Shown here one piece after another: positions 57,501 through 60,467 of a stretch of DNA of 64,000 nt. How positions within the stretch are numbered: position 1 is the first letter of the stretch; every line of letters begins with the position of its first letter. The DNA comes from Orbicella franksi (taxonomy: Eukaryota). The stretch is taken from contig OZ116701.1 in NCBI GenBank assembly GCA_964199315.1, positions 11,780,001 through 11,844,000 of the forward strand, given 5' to 3'. The translations under genes were made by a program, and so were the position numbers. The notes below the pieces were generated by a model that ran no database searches, was not told the DNA's origin, and saw only the letters and a list, made by a program, of their open reading frames with translations.

Positions 57501-58188
57501 AATCGGAGAGTTTAATTTCCGCGAGTGCACACGTGAAAGATCAAAGTTTTTGTTTTTTGGCAACGGTATTCTAATATAATCTCGAGTCTTATCAGTAGAG
57601 GGTCCGAAAAGGGTCAGTTGATTCAATATTCAAAGATTATAAAAACAGCTCCCAATTTATACAAACTGAACTGAGATCGGCGTGATGTTATTTTTTACAC
57701 ACACGCACACACATAAAATGTAGCCGAAACTATTAAGTAATCAGAACGTACATAGATACATTGCCATATTCATGTAAAGTTGTTTCAGTTCACGCATGGT
57801 GAAAGTACTTCCGTTCAAGAACCGGAAATTGTAGTAAGTTATTGAGAGTTAGAGTTTGTGAAGTTTCTTTCAGACTGTCCGTTTGAGTTGTACGACCTTT
57901 GTAATATAGCCAGGCATAGAAAATGTTAATATATTTAAGCGTTTTAGCGTTTATCACAGTTTTTGGAGAATTGTAAAACCACAATTGGACGTGACTCGTA
58001 GCCAGGAAGTGTACATTCTTTCACTGTGACGTAGTTGGTTTTAAAATCCTTTTTTTTTTTCCTGGCAGTTACAACACTGTTTCATTCTGTGTGTACATCC
58101 TTAGTAGTTCGTTTTAAACAAAACGTAGATGATTTCTAAATTCCAGCACGTTCAACTGGTGGTTCAATACATCCTGTTAATCGATGAT

Positions 58189-58200
58189 ATAATAATAATA

Positions 58201-58233
<33 letters not shown>
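58189..58233. repeat. (TAA)n microsatellite tract 1
   Basis: About 15 units with one interruption. Confidence 0.97.
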
Positions 58234-58236
<3 letters not shown>

Positions 58237-58503
58237 CTCACAAAGTACAAAGATCTTGAGATTGAAATCGAGAAAACGTGGGGGATGAAAACAACAACTG
58301 TCCCAGTGATAATTGAAGCTTTCGGGCTTGTCAAGAAGAGAACAGAAAACTACATCGGCAAGATCCTAGGCACTATTAGAATAACAGAGCTACAGAAGAC
58401 CGTCCTCCTTGGAACTGCTCACATACTTAGGAGGACTCTATCCATCAAGTAATCCGGCAGACTTACAACTGCCCTAGGCTCACGGATTGACCTCGGCACC
58501 ATA

Positions 58504-58506
<3 letters not shown>
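58234..58506 (+). mobile_element. 3' fragment of an R4/Dong-type RLE non-LTR retrotransposon (family 1)
   Basis: KLTKYKDLEIEIEKTWGMKTTTVPVIIEAFGLV...LLGTAHILRRTLSIK*, short 3'UTR, (TAA)n on both sides. Confidence 0.8.

Positions 58507-58570
<64 letters not shown>
58507..58570. repeat. (TAA)n microsatellite tract 2
   Basis: About 21 units. Confidence 0.97.
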
Positions 58571-58571
<1 letters not shown>

Positions 58572-59679
58572 GAGGGTTCCATCCACGGGACTGCGTGGCA
58601 CGACTTTATGTGCCAAGGAAGGACGGAGGGAGAGGTTTGATATCCGTAGAGGATTGTGTCAATCAAGCAAAGATATCGCTAGAATGTTATGTCCAAACAA
58701 GCGAGGAAGAACTGTTAAAAGCCGTCAGGAGGGATGGGGATGAGAATAGAGAAACAGCTGCCAACTTTAAAGCGAGGAGAAGAACTGAAAATATTCAAGA
58801 CTGGAAAGAAAAGCCGTTATATGGACAGTTTGCAAGACAGGGTGAAGAACAAAGAAGCGAGGAAACATGGACCTGGTTAAAAGAAGGAAAGCTCAAGAGA
58901 GAAACAGAAGCTCTTATCATTGCTGTACAAGATCAAGCAATACGAACAAACTATATTAAAACGATGGTTGACAAGTCACAGAATGACCCGAAATGTAGAA
59001 TCTGTAAGCAGAGTAACGAGACCATTAGCCATATTGTAAGTTCGTGCTCGAAACTGGCACAAAAAGAATACAAAAGGAGACATGATAACGTGGTTAGAGC
59101 AATCCACTGGGACCTGTCAGGAAAATGTGGGTTTGAACGAAAGGAGAGATGGTATGACCATGTTCCAGACAGTGTGCTTGAAAATGAGGATTACAAACTT
59201 CTATGGGACTTCAGTGTGCGAACAGACCATGAAATAGGGGCTAGGAGACCGGATTTGGTGATCATTGACAAGAGAGACAAGAGCTGTCAGATCATAGATG
59301 TGGCAATTCCAGAGGATAATGGGGTGAGAGAGAAGGAAGATGAAAAAGTTGAAAAGTATCAAGATCTAGCAAGAGAAGTTCGAAAAATGTGGGGTGTGAG
59401 GACAAAGGTTATTCCAGTGGTAGTGGGAGCATTGGGATCAATACCACTGAGATTGAAGGACAATCTGAGAGCCATTGAGGTGGGCATTCCTGTTGGACTG
59501 ATCCAGAGATGTGCATTGTTGGGGTCGGCAAGAATTCTTAGAAAGGTGCTGGAGATGTAGAAAGAAGAGAAAAAGCAAACAAGGGGTGTTTCTTGGCTTC
59601 CCTAGGCAACTTGTTGTTGCCCGGAGCCAATGAAGAAACCAGCTTCAATATCATCAATAGCTGTGCGAATCTTTAATCA
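58571..59679 (+). mobile_element. 5'-truncated R4/Dong-type RLE non-LTR retrotransposon (family 2), open ORF to 59560
   Basis: GGFHPRDCVARLYVPRKDGGRGL, CCHC knuckle CRICKQSNETISHIVSSC, restriction-like endonuclease RRPDLV...IIDVAIP...EKVEKYQDL; flanked by (TAA)n. Confidence 0.9.
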
Positions 59680-59702
59680 TAATAATAATAATAATAATAA
59701 TA

Positions 59703-59740
<38 letters not shown>

Positions 59741-59741
59741 T
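59680..59741. repeat. (TAA)n microsatellite tract 3
   Basis: About 20 units with one interruption. Confidence 0.97.
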
Positions 59742-60467
59742 TTATTACAGGAAGCTCTCTCACCTACCGGTGATATACCGAGGGATCCTGTTCTAAATAT
59801 ATCATTAATCACATAAGTAAAGGAATAAAATATGTTCTAAAACTAAAATAATGCAGAAAGAAAAAGAAATTACACGACTGAGAATGATTCCAAAAATTTA
59901 CCTTTAAAATCGGATATAGAACAAGAGTTTCTTAAATCTCTATATAAATTTTTCCCATCTTTGAAGGCATGGTAACAAGTTCTTTGCTTTCCCCGATTTC
60001 GTTTTACAGATGGAAGTCTAAGATCGTCTTTGTTGCGCGTACTGTACCGCGCTGTTTCTTCGCAGGTCTGTACTGTGGGAAGTTATTCCATTAACGCATT
60101 TCTAAACATAGAGGCAACGATGAAAGAGCGTCCGTTTTTCTAAGCTTAACCAGCCGCGTTGACTAAGTGCCTCCGTTGCGGAAGAATACAAAGGTAAGTT
60201 TAGCAGCCTTATTTTGTAGCAACTGTAGGTTGTTCATTAGAGCAGCATTATCCTTGCCGCCTCATACCATGTCAGGGTAGTCTGAAATGGGAAGGACGAG
60301 GCTTTTGTAGCAAAGAAGGCGTGCACTAAATGGTAGTAGTGCTTATTATTAATTCTGCGCAGAAGACCTAATCTTTGGTTCAGCTTAGATTTTACATGTT
60401 CAACATGTTTAGACCATGTAAAATTAGAGGACGGTATAACTCCTAGATATTTATATCAGCATAAAAA
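59741..60467 (-). mobile_element. Degenerate 3' portion of an L2/CR1-type LINE ending AATAAA-(TAT)n
   Basis: Minus-strand translation YLGVIPSSNFTWSKHVEHVKSKLNQRLGLLRRI ... ALSQRGWLSLEKRTLFHRCLYV*KCVNGITSH (post-RT region typical of L2/CR1); ctgtaataaa immediately followed by the microsatellite. Confidence 0.75.

Follow-up and report, generated by a model that had tools for sequence, protein, structure and literature searches.

A probable stepwise stack of non-LTR retrotransposons in (TAA)n tracts of a coral tandem repeat

Introduction

The Dong set of non-LTR retrotransposons, R4-clade elements with a restriction-like endonuclease (RLE), comprises Bombyx mori Dong, DongAg, DongBg, Darwinula Dong1/2 and unnamed cnidarian members. 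In most insects, molluscs and cnidarians, Dong elements target (TAA)n, and a published alignment includes Acropora members (PMC7998251); (TAA)n targeting in cnidarians, Acropora included, is covered by both PMC7998251 and PMC3812793. Dong/R4 members encode one ORF, whose N-terminus carries a diverged Myb/SANT-like domain but lacks zinc fingers (PMC7998251). The two RLE families described here, RLE1 and RLE2, have in common with Dong-like elements (TAA)n on both sides, a fixed orientation, a reverse transcriptase (RT) followed by a CCHC motif and an RLE, and frequent 5' truncation. They differ from the Dong case in that the same tracts hold two interleaved families that share only 35% protein identity. 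(TAA)n targeting is already published, including for cnidarians, and the locus is a tidy example with no new mechanism that leaves the understanding of Dong-type elements unchanged.

Three further systems invite comparison. R2 (8GH6, 8IBW-Z, 9DOU, 9NL2-4) has a thumb/linker-CCHC-RLE fold like that modelled for RLE2 (Foldseek E 5e-9), and the presumed mechanism, target-primed reverse transcription after an RLE nick, is common to both, whereas the target of R2 is 28S rDNA and that of the present elements a microsatellite; the RLE families do not belong to the R2 clade proper. R1 and R2 in rDNA, and TRAS and SART in telomeric repeats, likewise make repeated, co-oriented, 5'-truncated insertions with several families sharing a target, but that target is a fixed multicopy gene or repeat, whereas a dispersed trinucleotide tract that would be regenerated with each insertion is used here. 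Finally, microsatellites are born from retroelement tails, as with Alu/L1 poly(A) and the 3' repeats of RTE and CR1/L2 (PMC3812793, PMC2887409), RTE elements depositing SSRs in Lepidoptera (PMC3812793, PMC2887409), and the LINE of the present locus likewise deposits (TTA)n. These papers keep the two processes apart, whereas here the tract appears to have been re-used by an unrelated LINE lineage, so that one locus would unite microsatellite birth from LINE tails with microsatellite-specific LINEs landing away from genes.

Results

A 2.36-kb block interrupts one tandem unit

The window, a 64-kb stretch of DNA (64,000 nucleotides), contains a tandem array with a unit of ~2.16 kb, one copy of which (copy D) is interrupted by a 2.36-kb block at 58110-60467. 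As a first-pass annotation of the window had proposed, this block is an insertion relative to copy C: the left sides of the two copies match at 90% (55806-55949 against 57961-58109) and the right sides at 87% (55951-56600 against 60468-61119), with nothing between 55949 and 55951 in copy C. This paralogous empty site (55940-55960, plus strand, …CAGTAATAATTATTTG…) features a two-unit TAA-like motif, and the alignment runs unbroken across 55949/55951. It is the sole other junction of this kind in the genome. The target site duplication (TSD) suggested by the same annotation fared less well. The 5-bp motif TAGTT does exist at both edges of the block (58105-58109 and 60468-60472, plus strand), but its reading as a TSD is ambiguous, given that it requires a 3-bp indel relative to copy C and that the gap-free alignment leaves a 1-nt overlap.

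Between the left flank and the leftmost repeat tract lies a 79-bp segment (58110-58188, no strand assigned) that is unique in the assembly. A genome search (497 Mb) returned its self match alone, neither the window nor 61 loci gave a short-word BLAST match, no significant fold was found, and the genome holds no further paralogues of the junction, beyond this locus, with which the segment could be polarised. Contigs from four runs contain the 79 bp along with the left junction. Both outer junctions (57974-58180 and 60347-60545) were recovered, differing at 0-3 positions, from runs whose labels name four organisms. The Logan contigs of four public runs break at each TAA tract, and no intermediate allele appeared among them. 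An apparent empty allele, in which 58086 was joined to 60466 with 19 letters between, proved to be paralogue C placed at 90% likeness. A run of N occupies 3462-3636 of the window.

Three TAA tracts divide the block

Tract calling with Tandem Repeats Finder, read on the plus strand, gave a (TAA)15 tract at 58189-58234 (15 units, 95%, one TAG variant), a perfect (TAA)21 tract at 58507-58570 (21 units, 100%) and a third tract at 59667-59740 of ~24 units, with a TCA variant at its start and one indel, for which the program itself reports 59674-59740 (22 units, 93%). On the minus strand, the third tract reads as (TTA)n following the AATAAATA of a LINE. There are no other (TAA)≥5 tracts in the 64-kb window, and in 70 kb of unrelated flank their share is 0.16%, a background of ~0.2%. 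Together, the three tracts sum to 58 units, about three times the longest LINE tail seen (18 units). The proposal that one microsatellite was split into three therefore describes the arrangement incompletely: three tracts are present, but 58 units exceed every tail seen, which argues that the insertions added tract besides splitting it.

Two RLE families with R2-like features

The first of the two elements between the tracts is an RLE1 fragment at 58235-58506 on the plus strand, which covers 72 aa at the C-terminus of its ORF (stop codon at 58450-58452) and then 54 nt of 3' UTR. Truncated at the 5' side, it also falls short at the 3' side, where the last ~25 nt that other copies have before their (TAA)n are missing. 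The RLE1 family numbers 40 copies or more (93-96% identity), and the window ORF has 94% aa identity to that of a longer copy at locus L035. This longer copy (L035:3-578) matches RVT_1 at E 5.8e-12, and the sole relatives of its RT piece in the PDB are R2 proteins (E 3e-8). Variable 3' starts were observed for the window copy and for those at L037 and L050; variable and short 3' ends of this kind fit priming by the tract on an internal UAA.

The second element, an RLE2 fragment at 58571-59666 on the plus strand, retains 329 open codons (stop codon at 59558-59560) and ~106 nt of 3' UTR, and ends at about 59666, where the adjoining tract opens with the TCA variant. This fragment is also 5'-truncated, and covers a thumb/linker region, a CCHC knuckle and a PD-(D/E)XK endonuclease. 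The knuckle has the form C-x2-C-x8-H-x4-C and matches zf-RVT at E 1e-5 with 26.5 bits, just below the 27.5 cut-off; across 36 homologues, C142, C145 and C159 are almost invariant, as are P227/D228, D243 and K259/K262 of the endonuclease. A structure model of the C-terminal 329 aa (pLDDT 77 overall, 87-95 over residues 170-320) predicts a PD-(D/E)XK restriction-like endonuclease fold like that of R2 proteins, which make up all of the top seven Foldseek matches (E 4.7e-9 to 1.3e-5) and are followed by bunyaviral PD-(D/E)XK endonucleases and BsoBI. By sequence, a phmmer search of the PDB with the RLE2 C-terminus gave no R2 match, and the relationship to R2 is visible via the RLE2 fold and the RT piece of the RLE1 family. 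An RT lies upstream of the C-terminal region in longer copies and homologues, with PF00078 present in RLE2 homologues of 500-570 aa. Truncation has left the window copies without RT, and the genomic copies analysed extend to at most ~1.8 kb from the 3' end. A protein word-index search retrieved 1117 homologues, the named ones being only 'uncharacterized protein' entries from Montipora and Diadema; a contig location was sought for the Montipora homologue P0003 and none was found.

As the earlier annotation had stated, RLE1 and RLE2 are co-oriented, both are 5'-truncated, and they represent different families, since their proteins share 35% identity over 355 aa. The RLE2 family has at least 40 copies at 97-99% identity, many of them 5'-truncated with a common 3' end. 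Given such identity among 40 or more copies whose frames are open, RLE2 has probably been active recently, with precise targeting. Found in a reef-building coral, it is of some interest in practice as a naturally occurring integrase system of the safe-harbour kind.

Both RLE families insert into (TAA)n tracts in one orientation

The flanks of other copies carry the case for targeting. A (TAA)n-like repeat precedes at least 22 of the 25 RLE1 copies with an assessable 5' end, and (TAA)n follows 26 of 29, always in the same orientation. For RLE2, the sample comprised copies lying within RLE1 loci and copies from two further assemblies; all six assessable copies have the tract on both sides, two of these being from the further assemblies. 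A relative with 52% identity in another assembly also lies between (TAA)9 and (TAA)30. Insertion within (TAA)n, with tract at either end and always in one orientation, is the hallmark of Dong-like elements and is seen here against a background of ~0.2%. The flanking of other RLE copies on both sides that the annotation had predicted was thus borne out (at least 22/25 for RLE1; 6/6 for RLE2, again with 5' (TAA)n). RLE1 and RLE2 have the RT, CCHC and RLE of an R2-type lineage and behave like the published cnidarian Dong-like elements. A simpler reading would deny the elements any target preference, with (TAA)n as a tail that they make at their own 3' end and the array as a chance neighbourhood. 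The (TAA)n at the 3' end of copies is indeed what a self-tailed LINE would show, but the same tract, in the same orientation, at the 5' side of so many variously truncated copies of both families makes this reading scarcely credible.

RLE1/RLE2 arrays also occur at L054, L055, L057 and L061 and twice more on contig C6, with differing truncation points; these arrays are independent events and not duplicates of a single composite. The same observation bears on the view that the whole 2.36-kb composite, or at least the LINE, a tract and the 79 bp, arrived as one piece, whether by 3' transduction from a source LINE or by DNA-level duplication. Such an arrival would account for the possible 5-bp TSD that brackets the block, and the 79 bp could be the downstream flank of the source copy. 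Against this, the 79 bp have no second copy in the assembly, RLE1 and RLE2 are clearly unequal in their divergence from their own families, the other RLE1-RLE2 arrays are truncated at different points and this LINE is joined to an RLE element at no other locus. We consider both single-piece routes, taken together, to be quite improbable.

A LINE with a self-made (TTA)n tail

The right-hand part of the block, which had been annotated as a LINE from 59741 to 60467, is a LINE over 59741-60453 on the minus strand, but its last 14 nt are not. The fragment comprises the 3' 713 nt of a 5'-truncated element, with a decayed RT C-terminus, whose motifs are interrupted by stops and frameshifts, and a 3' UTR ending in …CTGTAATAAATA, followed by (TTA)n. 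The 14 nt at its 5' junction (60454-60467, minus strand) form a filler unmatched by longer family copies: those at L002, L003, L015 and L017-L022 all match from query base 15 onward. L017, a relative with 70% nucleotide identity, has a 697-aa ORF that matches RVT_1 at E 2.2e-34, and its best solved relative is LINE-1 ORF2p (E 4.5e-13), ahead of R2. Together with the C-terminal RT motifs of the window fragment, this identifies an APE-LINE-type reverse transcriptase; assignment of the window LINE to the L2/CR1 type is a plausible guess.

At least 40 genomic copies of this family share a common 3' end (42 matches at 68-89%). This end is constant, with …AATAAATA and then 0-18 units of (TTA)n, while the 5' flanks of truncated copies are unrelated and without tract, and short tails run into unique sequence. 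With variable tails and random, tract-free 5' flanks, the tail is therefore self-made and the LINE is not tract-specific; common 3' end, tandem-repeat tail, variable 5' truncation and lack of target preference are the features of a microsatellite-tailed LINE. Two points of the annotation are thereby upheld, namely that the LINE's 3' end abuts the repeat, which starts directly after AATAAATA here as in other copies, and that the repeat is of the kind that the family makes as its own tail.

A proposed stepwise history of the stack

The block is best read as a nested stack of non-LTR retrotransposons that formed stepwise, first the LINE with its own tail, then RLE1 and then RLE2, a reading to which we assign a probability of roughly 0.7. 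In the first step, an APE-type, CR1/L2-like LINE with a microsatellite tail would have inserted on the minus strand of one tandem unit, 5'-truncated to 713 nt and with a gain of 14 nt of filler, bringing a (TTA)n tail that is (TAA)n on the plus strand. In the second, this tract would have become the target of R2-type RLE LINEs that enter only (TAA)n and only in one orientation. RLE1, at 93-96% identity to its relatives, may have inserted first, and RLE2, at 97-99% and with its frame still open, later. The RLE would nick the TTA strand, and the exposed end would pair with UAA at or near the 3' end of the RNA and prime reverse transcription, early abort of which would give the 5' truncation. Each insertion would leave tract on both sides and so regenerate the target at this locus, renewing and lengthening the landing pad, which is our proposed reason for the 58 units in three tracts against at most 18 in LINE tails.

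Some observations count against the stepwise model. The 79 bp between the flank and the leftmost tract are not predicted by it and would require one extra event of some kind; the TSD is ambiguous, and identity to family members is a rough clock.

A rival reading has the reverse order: the tract and the 79 bp were already present when the LINE arrived, and the (UUA)n tail of the LINE paired with the tract. The tract could then be ancestral to the tandem unit and deleted in copy C, with AATAAT kept, or the product of an earlier tract-specific insertion, and a Dong-like tract would have served as landing pad for the LINE, the opposite of our main view. This order suits the gap-free alignment of copies C and D without a TSD and the two-unit TAA motif that copy C keeps at exactly this position; it accommodates the 79-bp segment, which has no other explanation, and at L029 the tail of another LINE-family copy contains a 54-bp copy of a further element, family X. 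The behaviour of the LINE family speaks against it, however. The LINE is not tract-specific, as its random 5' flanks and the unique sequence after its short tails show, and a chance landing in a tract is unlikely because tracts make up ~0.2% of sequence. In addition, the LINE is more diverged (84-89%) than RLE1 (93-96%) or RLE2 (97-99%), and the repeat begins directly at AATAAATA, as in other copies. With its variants counted together, we regard prior presence of the tract as unlikely, though deserving of weight.

In the preferred LINE-first order, the first-pass claim that a LINE tail created a landing pad used twice gains from the tract-specific RLEs and the self-made tail, but the tail as sole source of the tract is not borne out. 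Nor did seeding by the window's LINE family show up at other loci: no RLE protein match was present within the 1.5-kb flanks of its other copies (0/29), and none of the other RLE1 loci adjoins this family (0/29). Seeding by this family is therefore rare at best.

Other elements in TAA/TTA tracts

Family X, with at least 46 copies at 94-98% identity, occupies the same tracts on the strand opposite to RLE1 and RLE2. Its C-terminus features an R2-like H-x3-C / RHN / PD…D-V…K arrangement and no detectable similarity to RLE2; it had no match in PDB or Pfam, and a single-sequence structure model (pLDDT 31) was unusable. (TTA)n-ended elements such as family X do enter tracts here, and a tailed LINE could do so too, which also counts against the stepwise model. 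A flank repeat (Y; L038, L053 and L058) was considered as a tailed retroelement and rejected, being a ~320-bp MITE-like sequence that has an inverted repeat inside it and whose end does not coincide with the tract.

Tentatively, and at somewhat less than even odds, TAA/TTA tracts may form a self-renewing, strand-partitioned niche of several unrelated retroelement lineages that is seeded by the tails of ordinary LINEs and of SINE-like elements, where RLE1 and RLE2 enter the TAA strand and family X the opposite one, and the window LINE and family Z supply tracts. If this is true, one LINE class relies to a measurable extent on 3' tails made by others. Family Z is ~360 bp long and (TTA)n-tailed, and RLE1 sits in its tails at L049 and L059.

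A nested insertion in one unit of a tandem duplication

Self-comparison of the window revealed a region duplicated locally in tandem (unit ~2.16 kb), in which 57961-58109 and 60468-61119 of copy D match 55806-55949 and 55951-56600 of copy C with 90% and 87% identity, respectively. There is no sequence between 55949 and 55951 at the copy C junction, whereas the arms of copy D are separated by a block at 58110-60467. A genome-wide search (497 Mb, 805 contigs) found no other occurrence of the C/D junction beyond these window sites, so the presence of the block in D and its absence from C, as proposed in the first-pass annotation, were both borne out. 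The duplication spans 55542-62695, with two full junction-bearing copies and partial ones (77-90% identity), and no further copy of this region exists elsewhere in the genome. The window lies on contig C4 (11780001-11844000) and also contains a run of N at 3462-3636.

The empty site in copy C is CAGTAATAATTATTTG, a TAA motif of two units, while the left arm of copy D ends in …TAGTAGTT and its right arm starts with (A)ATAGTTATTTG. The proposed target-site duplication, TAGTT, is present at 58105-58109 and 60468-60472, but reading it as a 5-bp duplication costs a 3-bp indel relative to C; in a gap-free alignment the arms share one A only, and the duplication is therefore possible rather than established. 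Within the block, Tandem Repeats Finder identified TAA arrays at 58189-58234 (15 units), 58507-58570 (21 units, perfect) and 59674-59740 (22 units), and no further (TAA)≥5 tract occurs in the rest of the 64-kb window.

Public sequencing runs containing this stretch carry labels of corals or coral metagenomes. Both outer junctions of the block occur nearly unchanged in contigs of four runs with four organism labels, which indicates that the block ends are old and shared; the contigs of all four runs break at the TAA tracts. A single joint that skips the block proved to be paralogue C and not an allele without the inserts.

Two families of RLE-bearing LINEs

The block contains two plus-strand LINE fragments with a restriction-like endonuclease (RLE): RLE1 (58235-58506), which retains the last 72 codons, and RLE2 (58571 to ~59666), which retains 329 open codons. 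The two families are 35% identical over 355 residues and are thus distinct, as had been claimed, within one lineage. Genome searches returned at least 40 copies of each (93-96% identity for RLE1, 97-99% for RLE2), and RLE2 copies stop at a shared 3' point and start at scattered 5' positions. Among named homologues of the main ORF, the nearest comes from Montipora foliosa. Pfam analysis of the RLE2 region gave only zf-RVT, narrowly below threshold, and a weak match to a bunyaviral endonuclease, and a PDB sequence search with the RLE2 C-terminal region gave no match. When a structure model of RLE2 built on 36 homologues (pLDDT 77 overall, ~90 over the endonuclease part) was submitted to Foldseek, the top seven matches were R2 retrotransposon proteins (E 4.7e-9 to 1.3e-5), followed by PD-(D/E)XK endonucleases. 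Longer RLE1-family copies feature an upstream RVT_1 domain, whose only matches among solved structures are R2 proteins. Together, the modelled fold and this upstream domain indicate that RLE1 and RLE2 are RLE-bearing LINEs of the R2 group.

Both families are inserted into TAA tracts

We surveyed 29 RLE1 copies with 1.5-kb flanks, four of which run past the sampled sequence, leaving 25 assessable at the 5' end. Despite many truncation points, (TAA)n, intact or degenerate, stands immediately before at least 22 of these 25 copies, with three lacking a 5' tract, and (TAA)n follows the 3' end in 26/29 copies, always as TAA on the sense strand of the element. All six RLE2 copies with readable flanks (four inside RLE1 loci, two from other assemblies) have a tract on both sides, and a relative with 52% protein identity from yet another assembly sits between (TAA)9 and (TAA)30. 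In 70 kb of unrelated flanking sequence, such tracts make up ~0.16%, so their frequency on the 5' side excludes (TAA)n as a mere self-made 3' tail, and the predicted pattern of two-sided flanking in fixed orientation held for both families.

The RLE1 family 3' end runs ~25 nt past the point where the window copy passes into (TAA)n, at …GTTAA, and the copies at loci L037 and L050 have different internal starting points. Such variable 3' points are what would be obtained if the target's nicked TTA strand primed on any UAA near the RNA 3' end, and the short ends are a hint of this, although they may instead reflect later deletion. RLE 5' junctions are untidy: at L054, 14 nt (ACTGAGGGGTAACC) following the tract occur in duplicate, on either side of an RLE1 copy, and at L057 (1795-1890) the initial 12 nt of the RLE2 fragment recur ~50 nt upstream, in AT-rich filler.

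Arrays of both elements are common elsewhere, as RLE1 then RLE2 (L055, L057 and two more sites on contig C6) or in reverse order (L054 and L061). Their truncation points are different in each case, so the window pair represents two independent insertions and not a copied composite. L061 (G000:C9:26541291-26544551) combines an internally deleted RLE2 copy (query 98-670 missing), a degenerate tract and an RLE1 fragment, in that order; this arrangement is found three times within 250 kb on contig C9 (paralogues at C9:26397291 and C9:26301811), presumably by segmental duplication.

A LINE tail as the probable source of the tract

The minus-strand segment 60453-59741 translates, with stops and frameshifts, into the C-terminal region typical of LINE reverse transcriptases. 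Nearly all copies of this family (at least 42 genomic matches, 68-89% identity) share a terminal base, …CTGTAATAAATA, followed by none to ~18 units of (TTA)n and then unrelated sequence, while copies with many different 5' truncation points have unrelated 5' flanks and no tract. Judged from these copies, 59741-60453 is a genuine LINE that makes its own (TTA)n tail and does not favour TTA tracts. A 70%-identical relative encodes a 697-aa ORF (RVT_1, E 2e-34) whose closest solved structures are LINE-1 ORF2 proteins, and the original L2/CR1 label is a plausible, provisional one for a microsatellite-tailed APE-type LINE. The segment first assigned to the LINE extended to 60467, but the last 14 nt (60454-60467) are unmatched by longer copies and are filler at the LINE 5' junction.

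The proposed order is that the LINE inserted first, RLE1 second and RLE2 last, between the two. Identity to their own relatives fits this order, at 84-89% for the LINE copy, 93-96% for RLE1 and 97-99% for RLE2, whose frame is open. As in other copies, the tract starts directly after AATAAATA in the window LINE; as this LINE shows no tract specificity and tracts are uncommon, the simplest reading of the sequence is that its tail seeded the tract. The three tracts sum to 58 units, ~3 times the longest LINE tail seen, so the insertions add tract and do not only split one microsatellite into three, as first envisaged. The claim is also limited by the other loci surveyed: no RLE protein match was found within the 1.5-kb flanks of 29 further members of this LINE family, and none of 29 other RLE1 loci has this LINE family abutting RLE1.

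The landing-pad model is further limited by 79 bp (58110-58188) that separate the leftmost tract from the flank, since it predicts a tract directly against the flank. This segment has no second copy in the assembly and no likeness to the rest of the window or sampled loci. With copy C as the one paralogue for comparison, it may be a short (TAA)n-ended retro-copy that consumed the leftmost units, as three RLE1 copies likewise lack a 5' tract; alternatively, it may be transduced flank or ancestral sequence lost from C. Apart from this piece and the provisional clade labels, the first-pass interpretation is supported in its main lines, and the nested arrangement itself is confirmed.

Dong was described in Bombyx as an RLE LINE specific for (TAA)n, a target shared by DongAg and DongBg (PMC3812793) and by members from most insects, molluscs and cnidarians, with Acropora and Exaiptasia sequences aligned (PMC7998251). 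The window elements behave exactly like Dong and are putative members of the R4 clade. Microsatellites arising from LINE tails are also well known (PMC3812793, PMC2887409), with pre-existing targets and tail-made repeats handled as separate cases (PMC2887409). What is new here is therefore the instance, which involves two coral families that appear to be undescribed; this kind of element and of nesting were already known.

Other repeats associated with TAA/TTA tracts

RLE1 also adjoins the 3' end of an antisense copy of family Z, a ~360-bp SINE-like repeat, beyond the 3' tract of RLE1 at L049 (1025-1427) and L059, which supports the general tail-seeding idea from another family. Family Z copies all stop at the same base beside the tract, many share one 5' start, and (ATT)4 or more follows 7/25 exact 3' ends. 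Many copies also have a satellite-like repeat of ~50 bp upstream of them.

A third retroelement of high copy number, family X (213 candidates, giving at least 46 copies at 94-98% identity), shares these TAA/TTA tracts and is flanked by tract on both sides, but in the orientation opposite to RLE1 and RLE2. Examples are L035:1873-2861 (minus strand is sense), L033, L041, L048, G000:C1:34547432-34548344, C1:19968583-19968938 and L029:1391-1444, the last being a 54-bp copy within the (TTA)n tail of another member of the window LINE family. The R2-like order H-x3-C, RHN, PD…D-V…K is found at the family X C-terminus, and its 3' UTR features ~85-bp subrepeats; it has no detectable similarity to RLE2, and Pfam and PDB searches gave no match. 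Finally, L058:1826-2230, L038 and L053 share a ~320-bp unit that looks like a MITE and is often near TAA tracts. It contains an inverted repeat, seen as a reverse self-match of query positions 187-339, and its candidate copies, 94-99% identical, number more than 2900.
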